From positions 62,001 through 126,000 of the forward strand of contig JALMLS010000093.1 in NCBI GenBank assembly GCA_038496445.1: DNA of 64,000 nt. The letters are read 5' to 3'. The translations under genes and the position numbers were made by a program. The DNA comes from Trichosphaerium sp. ATCC 40318 (taxonomy: Eukaryota > Protista > Tubulinea). The notes beneath the pieces are model-generated. The model saw only the letters and a program-made list of their open reading frames with translations, was not told where the DNA came from and searched no databases. Shown piece after piece: positions 48,460 through 64,000 of the stretch (the first letter of the stretch is position 1; the number at the start of each line of letters is the position of its first letter).

Positions 48460-50773
48460 TTATTCTTGGGCATCAAACTCAATCCCCATGGCTGACATCT
48501 TTCTTATAAGCCCGCTTGGCGTATTTAGAGTATGTACGAACTGTCCTTCTCCTTTGTTGTATGATAAAAGACCAGCTCCATCACCGAACTTTACGATATG
48601 AACTGGATCTTTTCCATCCACTTTAAACACGTGCTCTTTCAAAATTGGATTGTCCTTGACACTCGCCAACACCTATCCAATCAATTTAATATTTTGGACT
48701 TTTCATGTATTATCACGGTTCCCGTACCTTCATAGGAGCAAGAGAAGATAAATTATGAGAAGCCTTAGTTGTTACAAAGCGTCCAGGACAGTTTGAAATA
48801 GGTTTCCAAACGTGCTTCTTCGACATTGTATCAAAAGAGATAACTAATCCATCTTTTAGACAAAAGTCACCTCGTATCATATACGTACCGCCTTTATATG
48901 GATCATGTCCTTGTACAATGACTGCCTCTACACAACCTGGAAATGTGTATCCCTGAAATTAGTGAGAACAAAGAAGATACCCCAACAAAAAGTTGGGTTT
49001 TTTGGCGGTTTGTTTTTTCGTGTGTACCTCAAAAGGAGACCAACCCACTTTGCTCTTAACCATGTGTCTATCAACTGTAACGGTTTCATTCATATTTATG
49101 ACAGTGAAAGATCCATAAAACCCTACAAAAAATGAACAAAAACAGTTGATTCTCAAATGAAAAAAAAACCCCAAACTTGCCTTCCTTGATTTGACCATAT
49201 TTAGCTTTTCCTTGATGGAACTGATTAAAGAAGTCACCTGGATTCTTACAAGCAACACGTGCGATATCCTTTAATCCGTTAAGTTACTAAAAACAGAAGC
49301 CAAGTTTTTTGGCATCAAAAAAAGGGAATCGGTACCTGAGGTGTAAATTTATGCTCTTTCATGAGCCACGCTGTTATCAATCCATACGTGTCTAATTGTG
49401 GTGTTCCGCTGGTACCGTTTAATTTAGCAAGACGACAACAAGCTTCCATATCTGATTCTAGTAGCTCTTTGTATGTTGTTTCTCCATTTGGAGAAAAGTT
49501 TTTAAACTTCTCTTGAATAGTATGTGGTGCATGGTCTGTAGCGATAAAATTAATGACACCTTCTTTCAGTGCTTCTATCAATTGCATGCGATGCTCTTTT
49601 GTTTGTAAAGCAGGGTTCATCTGAAGGTATGGCCATCGCTCTGGTCGAGCCTGTATTCCATACTTAACTCAAAGAAGAAAAAAGGGAGATGGACTTATTA
49701 TAAATCACGTGCCTTTAGCATATCGCTGTCAAAGAAAAGATGCAGTGGAGACACTTCAACAGTTGTATTGAACCCTTTTTTTCTGTGCTCTTTAATGAGA
49801 TCAAGAGATTTGAATCCGCAGGACCTTTGTTAATAACGTCAATAAGTAGTTCTAAAAAAGAAGTGCTAAAAGGTTTGGTTGGTACCAGTGGCATAGTTTA
49901 GCGTCAAGTTTGTAATCTTCGATTATCTTTAGGACATAAATCAAAGCTTTTTCAACACACTCGACAGGACGACGTTGATCATGAGTTTCTTTGGTCTTAT
50001 TGCACATTAAAATGTCATAGTCTTCCACATGAAAGCTCACTAATTATTTGGATAAATATTGTAATCCAAAAAAAGATGTCATTCTGTTTACCTGGTTTTC
50101 CTTGATACCTGACGAGCGTCTCACGAAGTTCTTGCTCGTTTTTAAAGAACAGAGGACCAACAGAGGGACCAGTATAAACCTTATAAGGTACGTTACTTGA
50201 TAGTGGAGATGTTCCAGGTCCTTTAGAGAGCAAAACGGTTAACAGACGATCATCTTTCGGGGGACACTACAATCAGTACGTACCAACACCACAATAGTTT
50301 ACGACGGATACTGGCATGTCTTTAGTTCGGGTTCTGTGCCAACTCAATTGTTCTTCGGTCAGCAGTGGATGTGGTGTGTTTGGCATTGCGCATACGTGAA
50401 CAACGCCTAGTGATGGTTAAAAAACGCGAAAACAATAGAAAACGCGAAAAAAAACAAAGAAAACTACGAACCTCCGTTAATTGCTGCAGCGCACGCTGTG
50501 TCGTAATCTTCTTTGTAATTTTGCGCGCCCTAAGACGAATTAGCGTTCTTTTCGCAATTATTCTCGTTATTTAACCTCTTTCTCCTCGCGTGCATGAATA
50601 TGTACATCACCCATACCAGGGAATATCAATAAACCTTCTTTTTTGTACGAGTAGGTTGCTTCGCCTAAATTTTCTCCAACACGCGTAATAATACCATTCT
50701 CTACTTCTACTTGCGCAGTAAAGTTCTTTTCTGGCCCTACAAACGTTCCCTCGACAATCACCTTGCTTGTCAT
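48460..50773 (-). CDS. Dihydroorotase-like amidohydrolase fused to a small C-terminal domain
   Basis: PGMGDVHIHARE, AAAINGGV..MPNT, FHVED, EVSPLHL, MNPAL, ATDHAPHT, SKVGWSPFEG; in-frame extension WKPISNCPGRF...HTLNTPSG. Confidence 0.9.
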
Positions 50774-51109
50774 TGTCTGAAAATGTGTAAAATCATCATC
50801 ACCTCGACTTAACATACTCACGTGACACGTGCTTCTAGAAAACTTAGAAGGACAACTTACCCAGACAAAAGGCTCTTACACACGCAGCTTGAAGGACTGG
50901 AATACGAATTAGTTTCAGCTGCACTTCTATTTCAGAACCCTCAATAGCAAGTGGCCATCCGCGCTTGTGTACTAAGATAACGCCTTGAAAATTCTGCGAT
51001 AACATTTGCAATCTTGAACACACCTTTATTGTGTCAGTGCAGAACCCCAAGTAGCCTAGTAATCGCTTTGCTGGTACATTTTCTAAAAATATTGGATTCA
51101 TTATCTGAA

Positions 51110-54100
51110 ATGTCCTTAACTGCAAAGTCAGTTTCATCTACAAAACCTATGGAACCAACATCACACCTAACAGCTAAACAGATTGCAAAGAGGCTCCGAA
51201 AGAAAAAGCGCCAAAACGCTTCAAATCCTAACAAGTGAGGTTCCACACGCTAAAAAGCTAGTAACACGAGAGTTTAGAGCATTGAGAGCTGAAAATACCG
51301 ACAGATATGATGAAGCGCCTCAAACAGTATTAGAATCGGATCAATCCAGTTCAGGGCTTCACGTCGTAAAGCTCATACATAAGAAAGGTCTAAAAGCTGT
51401 TGCGCGTAAATATAGCCTTAATACGCGCCGACACGCCATCTACACCAACCTGGTAGGCATAAGCGCCACTCCAATTAATTATTTATTCTCGAGTAGGTGT
51501 GCCTGAGCTATTCTCAGCTAGATTCTCCAATGGGCTCTCCAGTAACGCGAGAATGTAGAGGATTGGTAAAATGAAGCCACTAAATAGCATGTGACTTAGG
51601 GATTTAGGTACTTGACGAAAAAGCGGATTGGGCTGTTGTCTGCTTTCCCTACTCCAAGTTCTTTAACTTCCAAGAGCGACACGCACACAACATAGACTGG
51701 ACAACAGCACGGTACAATATGAATTGCTGATGAACGACGATTGAAGTTGATTTTTGTAGGGTTTTCGAGAAGCTAGATGGACGTATTATGAACGTCTACT
51801 GGTACGATAATAAATGGCACGTATCTAGCAACCGGGTACCAGACGCATCCGGTGAGATACAGGTAATAACTATCTATAAAACTACTTTATTGTTGATTTG
51901 AGGAAACTGACTTTTATGAAGATGACATCAGCGTCAACAGGTGCTAAAGTATCGTCTAAATTATCAACATTATTCTGGGATACTTGGAAGGATATAGGAT
52001 ACAAAATGCCGCAAGATACAACGTGCTGTTATATGTTTGAATTGGTTGTAGTAGACGCTTCAATCATTGTACAATACAAAAAAGATGATATCATATTTCA
52101 TGGGGCTCGTAAGCTGGATGCAACACTACAAGAGCTAGACCCACGTACCATCAAATTCTTGGTGTTTGTTTTGTTAAGTATACCAATAGGTACTATTGCA
52201 AAAGATAATGGGTGGTCTTGTGCTAAGCACGTGGAGGGGTTGACTTGTCTAGAAGGTATGGAAAAAAAATAATACGAGACTAAAACAGTAATACATGTCA
52301 ATAGATGTTGTTCAAGCTGCCAAAATATTGGATCCTCTGCAAGCAGAAGGATATGTTGTATGCGATGCTAAATTTAATAGAGTGAAAGTAAAGGCACCTA
52401 GCTATGTCGCACTTCATCATTTGTCGCACCTTAACAACAAGGAGACTAAAAATGAACGACGAGTAAGAATTGTCATTTGTGTTTTTTTGGATTCGACTAA
52501 CAACCACGTGTTGTAGATACTAGAAGTCATTCGTCACAATGAATCCGACGAATTCTTAGTGTATTATCCACACTTTAAAAAGGCGTATCAAGAAATAAAA
52601 GAGCAGTATGATGCGCTTGTAAGTGATGTACAAGAAGCATATGGAGGAGATAAATCTTCGAGCTATCTCAAAGCAATATTGGACTACATGCAAACATCCA
52701 ATGTTACAAGTGCTAAAATTTAAGACCCTATATGATATCATATTATGGACTAACACATCCTTTTTTCGTAGAGCAGTTCGAGACATGGAGCTGTCTGTTA
52801 TTGAAAAGGTAGGAATCACAAACAAAAAGCCTCATTTAGCAACAAACTAAAATATCTAAAAACTAGGTCCTCAGTGACTCCTATAGACCAGAATCACACC
52901 GTGAAGTGAATGATGATGATAGAGAAGTTATAAAAGAGGTACTAGTACACAAATATAGATACAAAACCTGACATGTGCACCCAGCTTGAATCAATAGTAC
53001 AAAAAGTGGAAAATTATAAGAATACAGGAAACAACAGAGATGCAACTTTTTCTCACGTGACAAAGGCTTATGACGCATTTTTTAAACACAATGAAATATC
53101 AAGCAGTACACGACCACTTATAGAAAGAATATTTTCGACAGCACAATCCTGCAAATGGACCAAAAAACAAAGGTCTCAGATAAAAGCTATTTCACAACAT
53201 ATCATAAAGTCAGCTGTTGGAAGTGGCGCTAAACAATCTGCTTCCTATAAAACAATTACAAATCGTCTAGAAATAGCAATGACAACATTACTTGCAGGTC
53301 CCTTAAAGTTTTCAGCGAACAAACGGAATCAAATCCTTGCGGAACGACTTAAGCTCGAACAAATCTTATCAAAACACTTTGAAGGCGCGAAACTATCATT
53401 CTTTGGTTCATTTGCTGCAAATCTAGCAATGTACGCAACCCCTCCCAACAAAGCGATCAACCTAGCTTGAAGTGCTCACCATATTTAGTGAGACGTCAGA
53501 CGTGGACTTGTGCATAAAAATACCTGACGGCGATTCCACAACAACCACTTCAGATTTCTGTAATATTTGTGCGGAACTGTTAGAAAAAGCAGGGTACGTA
53601 CACATCCAATGTGTAGATAATGCAAGAACACCGATAGTCAAGTGTGAAACAAAAGAAGGACTACAGATAGATCTTAGCATGGGCAATCATCTTGGAACAC
53701 TCAAAGCAGAACACTTGCGTTTTTTTTGCAATACGGATCCAAGGTTTAGGAAATTGGTCCTAGTTATCAAGCATTGGGCACAAAAGAGGCAAATTAATAC
53801 GTAAGTTATGCTGTAGCCAGTCAATCAGTTTTGCTTTTTATTCTCTGAAGCGCTTATTTACTTTGTTTTAGGCCTCAGACTATGACGTTGAATTCATATG
53901 TCTTTGTTCTAATGACAGTTTACTATCTTCAACATGCATGTGGTAAATACCCAGTACTACCTACATTACCTGTCTGTGGGTCTCAAGTACGACAACCGTT
54001 TTCTTTTTGAGAAGTTTGATTTATTTGTTTTCAAAGGAAAAGGCAACGGTTCAAATGTTGAGAGGACAAACACGTACCTTATTTAAAAATAAGAATGTTG

Positions 54101-54619
54101 AAGAATTGTTTCCACTGTACGCTTATAGAAAGCAAGAGAGAACACAAAACTCTAGCAACACTGTACGAGATATCGTACAAACCAAAGTAATCGTATACAT
54201 ATAGGGAGATTTGTTGTTAGGTTTCTTTAAGCACTTTGCCACAGAATTCGATTTTGATGGCGATTGTATTAGTGTTAGATGCGGTCATGCGATACGAAAG
54301 GAAGATAGTGCTATGGCGTTGACATCAACACCACAAGATTTTTGTGTGGAAGATCCTTTCATAGTAACTCCTTTTTCAAGTTAAACAACATGCAGCTAAC
54401 CTAACTCTTTAGCTTCCCGAAAATTGTGCTAGAACCGTATGCAGTGATACAATGAAACGAATAAGGGCGGAATTTTGTCGTGCATACATTTTATTATCAC
54501 GTGGCCAACCTTTTCAAGAGGTTTGTAAAGTACGCATACCATACATACCATTACGCGCTCACACTTTCATAGCAACCAACAGCAAAACTGACAAAACCAG
54601 AAATTCAAAAATGGCTTAA
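51110..54619 (+). CDS. T4 Rnl1-like RNA ligase fused to Cid1/TUTase-family nucleotidyltransferase
   Basis: Ligase: RECRGL, PYSKFFN, EKLDG, YMFEL, EGYVV, RVKVK. Transferase: FGSFAANLAIETSDVDL, NARTPIVK, IDLS, IKHWAQKRQIN, LNSYVFVLM, EDPF..N. Confidence 0.8.
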
Positions 54620-54706
54620 ATCCGTACAATAAATCAGGAAGTTAGTGAACAAAACAAACAAGTCTGGGAGATAGTTTACACTTTTTTTATTGGTTAATAA
54701 GGGGAG

Positions 54707-57700
54707 TTAGTTTCTCTCCTTCAAAATTGACACCTTTACAATCGACACAGTAGTCAAGGATTCTGTAAGAGCGTTTCCGAGTACGCGTGTGATTGAAGCC
54801 AAAGTTTCATCTTGATCATTGTCTCTTTCTACAGAAGAAGCCTTTACGGAAACCAGGATCTTAAGTTGTGTTGATAGATTTCTGAGCCTGTGTGCGTATT
54901 TAATGAGTTTATCCTGGTACATTGGGTTCTTGGCAGCAACGCGACCAGCGAGCTCCTTCAAGTACTTCATGAGTTTGTTGATTTGTGCAGCAACAGCACG
55001 TGCAGCTACAATCATTTCCTAAACAGAACTAGTGAGCACGTGGAGAATGGTCGGAGGATAGCATACCTGGCGTTTACCAGCTTTGGCAGCAGCGGCCAAA
55101 CGGGCAAGAGCCTCAGCGAGACCTTGTGATTCAGCTGGGTCGTTGCACTTGTTAACTGCTTGACGCACATCCCATGCGACACGTTCAATAACCTCTTCGA
55201 AAGTGTTGCCAACAGGTGGAGCCTAAACCATAAACCAGTCAGTACAGCTCCTTTCTATTTTGTGTCTTTGATAAAACGTACATCAGCAACTGCCATCTCA
55301 ATTGGTGGGCTGTCATCGAGAGCAGCCATGAGGGAATCGATAGATTGCGCTGGTTTGTAACCACCAGGGTTTGTGCCTTCAAGTTCACGGAGTGCTTGAT
55401 CCAAATCCATAGCGTTACGGGCCTTGTCGGATGTGCCAGGACCTTGATCCTTAGCCCAGTCAAGGCTAAAGTCCATCAAGTTACCGAGGGCATCACGTAG
55501 ATCCTAACGCATAACAATTAGCGGCAACATCAAACTTGTGATTCTCGGATAAAAACGTACTTGAGCAGCATCTAACAATGACATTGGGTCCATGTCCTCA
55601 CCGAGGTCTCTCAATGAAGCCATGATGGATTTGCATTTAGCCTTAGCTCTAGAGAAACGTATTAGTCTAATCTCTTCTTTGGGGTCGTATTAAGTGTGGG
55701 AAAAGCGGCAAGTACCTGATAAGTTCATCCTTATCATCAGCGTCAAGACCAGCTTGGAGGTCGTCCAACAAATCGTGGATCTTGTCTGATTGCTTAGCAA
55801 CGCTTGGCTTATCAGCAGCATCTTTTGATTGTAAATCGCGTCCAGCTTGTTCTAAGGCGTCGGCAATCTTGGCGAGGTTGTCCTTCTTGTGTGGAGGAAG
55901 AGCACCGAGGATACTTCTTACAGCATCAGCAACATCCTTTGTATCTCTGACCAATTCATCCTTGGCTGGTCTAACGTTACCGTTATCGCGAATAGCTCCC
56001 TTCAAGTCAGCGTGATCTTTCTTGGCCTTAGCGATTTTAGCAGCAATGTCACGGTCAGTTGTTGGTTGCAACAACTTTTTGGCGAGGGCGAGTGGGTATC
56101 CCATCCTGTCTGCGTCTTCGGCGACCTTCTTCTTCTTGTCGTCATCGTTTGGATTCTTCAAAGCGTCTTTGCCGTCGTTAACGATTTGCCTGACCAAGTT
56201 TGGTACGGTCTTCAAGGCGTCTTGTAGATCCTTTTTCAATCTTTGATCTGGTTCAGCGGCAACCATGGCGTTCAAGGCTTTTGTCTTGTCGACTAGGTCA
56301 CGAGCATTTTCTCCGAAACCTGGGGCGTCGTTACGGCGAGCGGCGTCGTCCAATCTGTTTAGGGCGTCTTCTACATCCTGAACAGCTGCGACCTTTGGTG
56401 CGTTGATCTCTTTGATGGCATCATCTTGAGCTTTTTTCAATTTGTTAGCCCAATCGTTCCAATCGTCGTTAGTCTTCTTGTCCTTTGGGTTATCCATCAT
56501 TCTATCCTTACCAACACCAAATTTCTGGGAAAGTATGTTAACATTTGAATAATAAAAAAGTGAGTAAACTGTTACCTTCCAGAGTCTTTTGAGTTCATCC
56601 ATAGGATCAGTGTCATCAGTAGGTAAGAACTTAATAGGTCCCTTACGTCTACGGTAGGCACGTTTGAAATCATCGCCGGCTTTGTTAAGGTCACGGAAAC
56701 CATCACGCATGCTAGGCAAATCAGTTAGATACAGAACGAGTGGTTACTAAGGTTCGTACCCATTTTTATCACCTCTGGCAGCAGCACCTCTGATACGGTC
56801 CATAGCTTCATCACATCTCTTCTTAGCATCACGCATAGTTTTTTCTTCAGGGACAGGGGAAGCAGCCTTGCCAGCGCGGTCAGCAGCCTTTTTGAGTTGG
56901 CGTCCGAGGTCGTCAACTTTATCAAGTTTGCCTTCGTTGTTAGGGTCATCGAGAGCATCGCGGGCAGCACGAGCGTATGCTGGCACGAGTTTGTTGACCT
57001 CATCAGCAGCCTTCAACAAATCTTTGGCGCTTTGAGGATCGTAGGCTTGCATTGCGCCAGCTACGCCTTTAGCCTTGTTGGCCAAGTCGCGAGCAGCGGA
57101 GCCCAATTCCTTGGTTGCAGAAGCAGCGGCTGGCTTGTCATTGTCGTGAGCAGCATTACCGAGTTTCTTTGCGGCGTTCTTGATGGCTTCAGCGGCGTAT
57201 GGAACTTCGTCTTCAGGGTTGAGTGCGGCGTCGTGAATCTTTTGCATTGGGTCTTCCAACTCTTGGGCGACTTGCTTGATTCTCTTTGGGTTTTGCTTGT
57301 CACCAGGGTTGTCACGGGCAGTCTTGATGGCATTGTCGAGTTTAGGACCGAGTCTAGCCAACTCGTCAACAGCACGCATAACATCGGCCATCTTTTTCTC
57401 GTCGTCATCGAGTTTTCCTTGCAAGGCATCCTTCAAGTCTTCAAGACGCTGAATAAGAGCGTCTGTGTCATCAGCACATTGCGCCTTCTTGGCTGGATCG
57501 TTTGGAGCGTTAATTCTAGCATGCAAGGTAAGCAATAGCTCTATCTTATTTATTCAAACCGCCAACTACATACCTGTCCTTGATAGCACCAAGTTCCTTT
57601 GGCATTTGCTTCTCGACTTGGTCCAAGCATCCATTGATCAAATGTGTTTGTGCAGGATCCTCACATTTCCTTGCAGCATCTCTGGTGAGTTTGCTTACGT

Positions 57701-61955: not shown

Positions 61956-64000
61956 ATGTCTTCTGCTCGGTTCAATACGATGAAAAATGTTACACCGCCC
62001 AAGCCGCCACGGCTAGGGGCTAAAATTTCCTCCAAGGACTGGGAAGCTTTATGCGAGATAAAAGCCAAGATTGTTAGACTCAGGACCACACGTGATAGGT
62101 TCAGATCGTTGCTAGAACAACGTAGAAAGATCTTAGATACCAAAGTACAAAACAGACAAAAAGTAAATGAGCGCATAGAAGAGGAGACAGGCAATTTTAT
62201 TGATATTATTCAAAAAGAAATGAAGAGCAGTGAAATCAACACACCGCCACCAAAGCACACGCGTGGAGGCAGGCGGAATCTTTCATTTAGGAAGAATCAT
62301 CATAGCCTAATAATAAGGTAAAAAGGTAACATTAGATTTTTTTAGTTTTCTGTTAAAGTTTGTTTTTTTTTGCTCCTCCTTGTTTTTCATTATTTTTTTT
62401 TCCCCTCTGGACTGCATTTTATTGCAACCAACGCGTGTACGAGCATACTCGTGCATTATATGACCCGTTAAGAGGTCATTTTACTGGTTGCGCCAGAATA
62501 CTCGTTGTAAACAACGAAAACCAACTCTAATAATCCAGTTTCAACGTGTACTACTTTTTTTTGAATTCTTTTGGTGATTATAGCCATCGGAGGTCTCTTC
62601 ACACTAGATCAGCGCCTTACCGCTCCAATACAATTTAACGACCTTTAGCAAGCACGACATGGAAGAGTTTAATAAAAAGCATTTTAAAAATAGAGGGAAG
62701 GATGCGAAAAGTGACTCAAAAGATTCTGATGGTGGTAGTGATGCGGTAAATAACTCTTCAAGGTAATTGCAATTGTGGGTTTGGTAGTTTTTGCGCCTAA
62801 TCATTAATAGGCGCGGTAAGTTTACCTTCTCCATTGGCTCTACAGTGCCAGTGCGTAGTTCAACGGAAAGAGAGTTCACAGTACGAGTAGATTACACACC
62901 GAAATTCTAATTGGGATCTAGTCATACTTGGTTACCGTATCTTACCCCAACATGCAAACCAAGACAATTCTACGTCGTTTCCGCCAGTTTGTAACGCTTC
63001 ACAATGCGGTAAGACCATTTTTGTGCAATGTTTTACCTCTGTTTTTGGTTGCTTGTCACGTAAGAATTATTCTAATTTTGCTTTAATTAGGTGTCAAAAC
63101 GATTTCCTGATTTGAATTTGCCACACTTTCCTAAGAAACGGTTAATGGGTAACCTTAGCAATACGTTGGTTGAAAAGCGTCGCCAAAAACTAGAAGTGTA
63201 CCTTCACTTTGTATCAAGTTTGGCAGGTATTGAAGACTTTTTGGCGTTTCAAACGTTTTTGGGCGGTGATTTACGTCAGCGTGGCATTAAAAAAAAGAAA
63301 AGGAAGCACATGTTTTCTATGGGAAGTACTCAAGATAGTAGTGATTCAGATTTTTCTGATGATGATGGTACACTCTTTGTTTTCATCCGGCATTTGAAAT
63401 TAAATTATTTACTTTTTGTGGTTTTTTTTTTTTTTTCAAATAAGAATTAAACCTTGTTTTTGTAGATTATTTAACGCCTGAGGAGCGTGAGAAGGTGTTG
63501 AATAAAGAAAAGAGAATTCTAAAGGTTGAAGGGTATTTGAGACTTTTGGATAGCTCAATTGAGAAGCTTAAAGCGATAGAACGTAAGTTTGGAGTAGTTC
63601 GTTGTTAATTCATTAATTTTTGTGCTTGTAGGTTGCTTTCAACAAGTTCAAGAAAAGGAAGATTTTATCCCATTGTCCGAGTACTCCAAACTAGTTGTAC
63701 AAATAGGTCGTCACCTGGAGAACCGCGACCCAGAGCCTGATTTGGTAGCAAAAGACATGACACAAGAACAGGCGGCCAAGATTAAAAACCCAAGAATTCG
63801 CAGTATTCGCATGAAAATGACGCCTGCAATCGCAGAGATTATTTCCAAGTTGTCTATGCTTAAAGGAGAGCTGTTGAATATTGATATGCCGGATGACGTG
63901 GTTCAGGACTTGATGGAACTTGTCAAGCGCACAGACGAAATTGTGAATTCTGTCAGTTTGGTTGTGCCCGTTGTAGGCTATAAGATTGAATCAGGCACCG
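61956..64000 (+). CDS. PX-domain protein with coiled coils (3' end runs off the window)
   Basis: ILRRFRQFVTLHNAVSKRFPDLNLPHFPKK..VEKRRQKLEVYL..FQTFL. Confidence 0.85.

Follow-up and report, generated by a model that had tools for sequence, protein, structure and literature searches.

A probable RNA ligase–terminal nucleotidyltransferase protein in the tubulinean Trichosphaerium: candidate enzyme for 'add and seal' repair of RNA

The window analysed here is a whole stretch of 64,000 nucleotides (nt) from Trichosphaerium sp. ATCC 40318 (Eukaryota; Protista; Tubulinea), positions 62,001 to 126,000 of the forward strand of contig JALMLS010000093.1 (assembly GCA_038496445.1). Its plus strand carries the exons of an Rnl1-type RNA ligase and, next to them, those of a Cid1-type terminal nucleotidyltransferase (TENT); the two probably form one gene (Table 1), whose product may add nucleotides to broken RNA and reseal it. 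The locus is of eukaryotic type and rich in very short introns, and the run of plus-strand exons was obtained by three-frame translation and by reading of the DNA. The favoured gene model (model C), with 18 exons separated by 17 introns (42–71 nt), translates without internal stop into 885 amino acids (aa). It is colinear from end to end with an ortholog, P0039, from Pyxidicula operculata (Amoebozoa, Arcellinida), the stretch CVEDPFILPENCART being identical in both. An earlier note, made from the bare sequence, had proposed a ligase-transferase fusion at this place; the sequence features that it listed all lie on the plus strand where it had put them, including, to the exact nucleotide, the codon of the ligase lysine.

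The eight introns of the ligase half (42–59 nt, GTR...AG) were placed by frame continuity and similarity to homologues, not by RNA. The spliced ligase model reaches 413 bits (E 1e-127) with a profile of 56 stand-alone Rnl1-like ligases, and in the family alignment none of the 14 invariant columns is lost and 53 of the 61 columns conserved at 90% or more are retained. The column of the motif I lysine is invariant across 61 homologues and, in the alignment of the ortholog, corresponds to 'KEDGS' of T4 Rnl1; the upstream Rnl1 elements ECRG and KFFN are present as well. A phmmer search with one exon piece returned 227 relatives, mostly stand-alone proteins of 350–400 aa, the named ones being labelled 'T4 RnlA family RNA ligase' and coming from cyanobacteria, a Promethearchaeota metagenome-assembled genome and Balamuthia. 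On PF09511 the single exons of the window, which are too short, give at best 19.8 bits for a cut-off of 28.3, and the ortholog P0039 gives 74.5 bits. By its sequence the window ligase is a complete Rnl1-type ATP-dependent RNA ligase.

T4 Rnl1 is the closest solved structure on two counts, which bears out the earlier description of the ligase as Rnl1-like. It was the sole solved relative of the ligase in a PDB sequence search with the ortholog as query. The AlphaFold model of the ortholog ligase module (predicted local distance difference test score, pLDDT, of 88.8) retrieved 2c5u, 5tt6 and 9do4 as top Foldseek matches, at about E 1e-15 over ~420 columns, with T4 Rnl1 best; Trl1 ligase domains and Rnl3 came next, and Rnl2 structures ranked 35th or lower. 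The likeness includes the fold, the motifs (an Arg54-type 'ECRG', 'KFFN', KxDG, FEL, EGYV and KxK) and an all-helical C-domain, present in the ortholog model, of which the window protein would lack the last two helices unless the intron at 52710 is removed. Identity to T4 Rnl1 is nevertheless only ~18%, and P0039 scores 57.3 bits on TIGR02308, the T4 RnlA equivalog, far below its cut-off of 242; the ligase therefore belongs to a distant subfamily of the Rnl1 family and is not T4 RnlA itself. Close to its N-terminus the basic patch KRLRKKKRQ is a possible nuclear localisation signal, and a metagenomic ortholog (locus L011, see below) has a Lys-rich N-terminus too. Four Rnl1-type loci were seen in this genome, i.e. 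that of the window and three paralogues (L001, G000:C35:242661-243800; L003, C37:53057-54248; L004, C13:126783-127196), and no TENT match lies near these three.

After the ligase a mostly helical linker would lead to the TENT. Its catalytic triad is intact, the carboxylates aligning, in the alignment of the ortholog, with the DxD and the third Asp of TUT4, and both of its domains score above the Pfam cut-offs: the MTPAP-like palm (PF22600) with 51.9 bits for a cut-off of 27 (1.1e-13), and PAP_assoc (PF03828), which begins at 54205, with 48.8 bits for a cut-off of 22.6 (8.3e-13). The nearest solved relatives of the ortholog TENT are TUT4, TUT7, CutA, URT1, GLD2 and Cid1; palm and PAP-associated domains, the GS...DxD...D arrangement, the KHWAxxR and SY motifs and an EDPF recognition loop are what the window TENT shares with them. 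To our knowledge, none of these characterised enzymes has been described with a ligase domain. Domain and motif content thus make the window polymerase a Cid1/TUT4/7-like one, complete and with an intact triad, as it had been read at first.

RNA evidence comes from one small public run (X1), the spliced contigs of which match the window at 99% or more. Over the transferase half they cover 53128-53391 and 53572 onward at a depth of 5–9 and contain the joints of five GT..AG introns: this half is transcribed and spliced. Because the intron 54530-54572 is one of the five, the stop moves from 54619, where the earlier note had ended the gene, to the TAA at 54630-54632. Four single-base differences between the X1 contigs and the assembly (53311, 53316, 54282 and 55163) suggest a slightly different strain or allele; no allelic or second copy of the gene was found in the genome.

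Two positions distinguish the window TENT from Cid1. Cid1 His336 is the uracil reader, its side chain being hydrogen-bonded to uracil O4 (PMC13702519); the aligned residue of the window is a Glu, lying in EDPFILPENCAR. The same Glu is found in six of the six ligase-fused TENTs scanned for the motif and, by eye, in P0158, and neither the window nor any ligase-fused TENT examined has the histidine. The position of Cid1 Asn171 is Leu in the window and Leu or Ile among the ligase-fused TENTs. Since the uracil-reading His is replaced by Glu and the Asn171 position by Leu/Ile, a U-specificity of the polymerase is unsupported: the nucleotide preference of this TENT cannot be told from sequence, and 'TUTase' is an unproven name.

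The case for a single ligase-TENT chain is comparative. P0039 is a 'complete' open reading frame (ORF) of 1012 aa on a Trinity transcript, with RNA_lig_T4_1 at residues 78-300, the MTPAP-like palm at 601-743 and PAP_assoc at 862-915. P0101 is an uninterrupted ORF of 634 aa running from mid-ligase through the TENT on L011, a metagenomic contig of 3.8 kb (28% GC); the N-terminal half of the ligase lies directly upstream and is joined to it over a 23-nt GTAAG..AAG intron (L011:873-900), placed straight after the EKLDG codons, which gives a fusion of 817 aa. The single-chain architecture, as predicted from a transcript ORF and a genomic ORF of two other organisms, thus occurs in nature. Word-indexed protein searches and a metagenome scan gave no further ligase-then-TENT orthologue beyond these two. 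Six metagenome loci considered as fusion orthologues were discarded, being generic TENTs without a ligase.

In the window itself the frame of the ligase meets a TAA at 52721-52723; this stop is real and continuity needs splicing, as the earlier note had warned. In all, 65 phase-compatible chains bridge the junction, every one of them through the donor at 52710, the only GTR donor available. The acceptor 52771, the acceptor 52874 or the donor 52901 give alternative readings to model C; two other chains, A and D, are possible. The lengths and the branch-like motifs of the bridging introns are within the range of the confirmed introns, with CTNAC-like motifs at the usual distance in two of the three. 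Codon usage favours model C over A weakly, and confirmed exons score poorly too. A model B using the donor GTATG at 52606 was rejected: it is 15 bits worse and deletes conserved sequence.

The alternative is that of two adjacent genes, translated separately and perhaps cooperating as the products of fission of a fused ancestor. The ligase would then end at the TAA 52721, or at the TAA 52848 if the first intron alone is removed, and the TENT would start at the ATG 52785 or 52973. Such models are coherent, with a stop in frame and in-frame ATGs downstream of it, and several further observations speak in their favour or weaken the single gene. The sole usable donor is an atypical GTGCT, 11 nt before the stop, and the favoured acceptor is a GAG directly after TAG. 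Among 500 dinucleotide shuffles of the junction 173 (35%) were also bridged in frame, so that a bridging chain is by itself weak evidence. The ligase profile (56 members) does not reach the tail at the junction, and the peptide after the junction, compared with homologue tails, gives z values of ~1.8 (model C) and ~1.4 (model A), which do not discriminate between splice models. Short intergenic spacers do occur, the convergent neighbour ORF ending (54707) only ~75 nt from the transferase stop, in the sole intergenic spacer measured here. Finally, the RNA contigs are confined to the TENT half, 51110-53127 (ligase and junction) having none in X1; but this gap says nothing either way, because a stand-alone TENT mRNA would also need ~150-340 nt of the uncovered stretch at its 5' end.

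Against two genes, both other organisms with the ligase-then-TENT order have one ORF, and the three bridging introns resemble the other introns of the gene. Moreover, two confidently modelled helices, which close the ligase C-domain in the AlphaFold structure predicted for the ortholog, lie past the point that matches the window TAA; a ligase stopping at 52721 would accordingly be predicted to be truncated, at the cost of the end of a conserved domain. Weighing the strong prior given by the orthologues against the weak signals of the junction, we consider it most likely that ligase and TENT form one gene, and two genes improbable. The fusion first proposed is thus borne out as an architecture by P0039 and by P0101 with L011, whereas the continuity of the window gene lies in the stretch that the RNA contigs skip.

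Table 1. Coordinates of the predicted ligase-TENT gene in the window (position 1 is the first letter of the window)
Feature	Position	Strand	Basis or remark
Whole proposed gene	51110..54632	+	Favoured model C, hand-built from sequence
Rnl1-type RNA ligase module	51110..52709	+	Nine exons from ATG 51110; homology and GT..AG boundaries
Ligase exons 1-5	51110-51234, 51278-51452, 51497-51565, 51608-51711, 51760-51862	+	
Ligase exons 6-9	51922-52144, 52190-52255, 52305-52462, 52517-52709	+	
Basic patch KRLRKKKRQ	51188..51214	+	Read from sequence
Motif I EKLDG	51767-51781	+	Lys codon 51770..51772, predicted AMP-accepting nucleophile (Lys162)
Motif III YMFEL	52030-52044	+	Conserved or invariant in homologue alignment
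Motif IV EGYVV	52346-52360	+	Conserved or invariant in homologue alignment
Motif V RVKVK	52379-52393	+	Conserved or invariant in homologue alignment
Junction region	52710..52984	+	Model C: introns 52710-52773, 52809-52866, 52939-52984; exons 52774-52808, 52867-52938
In-frame TAA	52721..52723	+	Ends the ligase frame unless the intron from 52710 is removed; sequence
Linker and Cid1-type TENT	52985..54632	+	Seven exons; Pfam, spliced RNA contigs
TENT exons	52985-53430, 53489-53800, 53872-53986, 54037-54162, 54205-54363, 54413-54529, 54573-54632	+	
FGS motif of TENT	53402	+	
Catalytic Asp codons	53499-53501, 53505-53507, 53670-53672	+	SDVDL (53496-53510) and QIDLS; triad intact
Glu codon in EDPFILPENCAR	54419..54421	+	At the position of Cid1 His336 and of the TUT4 'HN' histidine; TUT4 alignment
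Five RNA-confirmed GT..AG introns	53801-53871, 53987-54036, 54163-54204, 54364-54412, 54530-54572	+	Joints in spliced contigs, run X1

The same two subfamilies are also joined in the reverse order, TENT then ligase, in at least four predicted proteins: P0151, P0145, P0153 and P0158. P0153 was found on three transcript-like contigs of ~3.5 kb (loci L012-L014), each almost filled by the ORF. The ligase domains of the reverse-order proteins share the signature LSYSQxESPMxSPVVQECRG and their transferases an ENxAR loop. P0151, P0145 and P0153 carry an N-terminal DxDGT motif of the HAD type (with weak NT5C matches, best E 0.002), and P0151 displays in addition two HxT motifs, like those of 2H phosphoesterases, a weak tRNA_lig_CPD match (E 0.04) and an R3H match below the cut-off. 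We take these as leads, not findings; they suggest that the reverse-order proteins may heal, tail and seal in one chain.

Trees built with limited sampling place the fused modules together. In the ligase tree 7 of 7 fused ligases fall in an 18-member set (95% by the Shimodaira-Hasegawa-like approximate likelihood-ratio test, SH-aLRT), apart from a mostly bacterial clade of 45 members; in the TENT tree a branch supported at 100% by SH-aLRT separates the six fused TENTs included from 16 fungal TENTs. The same ligase subfamily also occurs fused to other end-processing modules, in P0125, P0146, P0152, P0035 and P0050, several of them from amoebozoan transcriptomes: either an RNase T exonuclease, or an AAA_33 kinase with a DSP phosphatase and others. 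In P0027, P0154, P0159, P0161 and P0162, modules of LAGLIDADG homing endonucleases or of inteins (PF03161, PF14890) split the Rnl1-like ligase.

Among the bacterial relatives of which the neighbourhood was examined, the closest is in a Microcoleus genome (L021:1725-7112): downstream of the related ligase comes a gene with kinase and HAD_PNKP domains, set among toxin-antitoxin genes, with the antitoxins SocA_Panacea and PhdYeFM close by. In cyanobacteria the subfamily is thus found adjoining a Pnkp-like gene in one member, as in the T4 pair of Pnkp and Rnl1. In the window the partner is, in contrast, a polymerase predicted to extend 3' ends, probably covalently fused, and not a kinase-phosphatase. 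Fungal and plant Trl1, the second-best class in the fold search, resemble the window protein in that an Rnl1-like ligase is fused to end-modifying domains within one eukaryotic polypeptide, but the healing domains of Trl1 are a kinase and a cyclic phosphodiesterase, and the enzyme depends on an end with a 2'-phosphate. No Pfam match to a kinase, a phosphatase or a phosphodiesterase, including the polynucleotide kinase and 2H cyclic phosphodiesterase of Trl1, was obtained in the window exon pieces scanned or in P0039, in agreement with the lack of a healing domain remarked on at the outset.

The usual account of RNA repair is 'heal and seal'. Whether cells are also able to replace lost nucleotides has been addressed only recently, in bacteria, through RlaP nucleotidyltransferases, which are encoded beside RNA ligases (December 2025 preprint, PMC12776372). 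Before sealing takes place, RlaP extends damaged RNA at its 3'-OH by one or two nucleoside monophosphates, and it is needed to recover tRNAs with lost nucleotides; the authors propose it as an antidote to nucleotide-excising ribotoxins such as RloC and PaOrf2 (PMC12776372). The window protein has in common with it a transferase of the Pol-beta superfamily genetically coupled to a 5'-phosphate RNA ligase, and would follow the same logic of adding, then sealing. The differences are that RlaP is bacterial, encoded by a separate gene of an operon, and of family PF10127, while the window protein is eukaryotic and probably fused. When the window pieces and P0039 were scanned with Pfam, the transferase families returned were PF22600 and PF03828, without a match to PF10127; the window transferase is hence no RlaP.

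Both modules would work at the 3'-OH of an RNA. The simplest way of coupling them is to lengthen the 3' end and then to seal it, with ATP, to a 5'-phosphate. The substrate would be a broken RNA with a 3'-OH and a 5'-phosphate. The TENT, through its DxD...D two-metal site, would lengthen the 3'-OH end by one or a few nucleotides and so make good what nucleotide-excising ribotoxins have removed or exonucleases have nibbled away. Sealing of the break by the ligase would follow in the three classic steps: adenylylation of Lys162, transfer of AMP to the 5'-phosphate and attack by the 3'-OH. Healing of the ends, where needed, would be supplied by other proteins. The protein would thus correspond, in a eukaryote and in fused form, to the pairs of RlaP and RNA ligase known from bacteria. 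The earlier idea of an enzyme that adds nucleotides and religates now has an experimental precedent in bacteria, and applies here by analogy. We give roughly 45 to 50% to 'add and seal' repair of RNA breaks by a ligase-linker-TENT protein of ~885 aa. A role in repair is favoured because the ligase subfamily adjoins Pnkp in bacteria and because the reverse-order fusions show apparent end-healing domains. Two points weigh on the other side: throughout the fusion family the activities are predicted ones, and an untemplated addition would often put in the wrong base.

The protein might also be fused and yet serve something other than repair, the TENT acting in triage or marking, with unsealable ends tailed for degradation, or tailing RNAs that are to be circularised or joined in a pathway of small RNAs or of RNA processing. 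Its closest solved relatives (TUT4/7, URT1, Cid1 and CutA) mostly tail RNAs and thereby govern their decay or maturation, and Rnl-family ligases are able to circularise single-stranded RNA (PMC2577357). We think such a role unlikely: the pairing with Pnkp in bacteria and the apparent end-healing domains of the reverse-order fusions both point to repair, and a covalent ligase has no obvious use for a decay mark.

Programmed insertional RNA editing, in which cutting, adding and sealing at defined sites would make the protein a one-chain analogue of the kinetoplastid U-insertion subcomplex, appears very improbable. The chemistry is indeed that of the editosome insertion module, in which a TUTase is paired with a ligase (PMC5159558); there KRET2 (the TUTase) and KREL2 (the ligase) perform nucleotide addition to a 3'-OH and then ATP-dependent sealing within one particle. 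But the editosome enzymes are separate scaffolded proteins, mitochondrial and templated by guide RNA, and the window gene has neither an Rnl2-type ligase nor an editosome-type TUTase: its ligase is of the Rnl1 type, Rnl2 being far lower in the fold search, and its TENT resembles TUT4/7 (E 2e-35 with TUT4) far more than it does the editosome TUTases (5e-7 with MEAT1). Neither a guide nor a nuclease nor an OB-fold partner can be made out, and the orthologues have acidic or Lys-rich N-termini, not mitochondrial-looking ones; mitochondrial targeting was set aside on these grounds.

As to novelty, no description of a ligase-TENT fusion was found by full-text searches of the literature, although the review of Burroughs and Aravind (2016) might still list the architecture. 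For the fusion this agrees with the earlier impression of an unrecognised architecture; the pairing of a transferase with a ligase in RNA repair is, on the other hand, an already recognised theme, with another transferase family and separate genes. What appear new are this pairing of families, the covalent fusion in both orders and the eukaryotic spread. The covalent fusion of a tailing enzyme with an Rnl1-type ligase speaks strongly, at the level of genomes, for the two activities sharing an RNA end in eukaryotes too, all the more so as it is found repeatedly, and in either domain order, in distant protists. It offers a compact enzyme with which to ask how tailing is coupled to ligation, whether eukaryotes counter nucleotide-excising ribotoxins and what the Glu of the loop selects, and an enzyme that adds then ligates in one chain could serve as a tool for RNA manipulation. 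A wider proposal, which is conceivable but rather doubtful, is that the ligase-TENT and TENT-ligase proteins would define an undescribed and conserved eukaryotic pathway of RNA repair. One enzyme would there rebuild lost nucleotides and reseal, as an antidote to ribotoxins of the RloC/PaOrf2 type, with occasional untemplated insertions and a nucleotide preference of its own set by the Glu of the loop.

Two neighbours of the gene were recorded. Downstream, a convergent gene occupies the minus strand at 54690-55400 and beyond, with X1 contigs at a depth of 36–50, above the 5–9 of the transferase, and RNA-confirmed introns at about 55018-55065 and 55222-55280. Upstream, a piece of an ORF on the minus strand (50567-50821 of the window) contains GMGDVHIHAREE, presumably reminiscent of the metal-binding motif of amidohydrolases.

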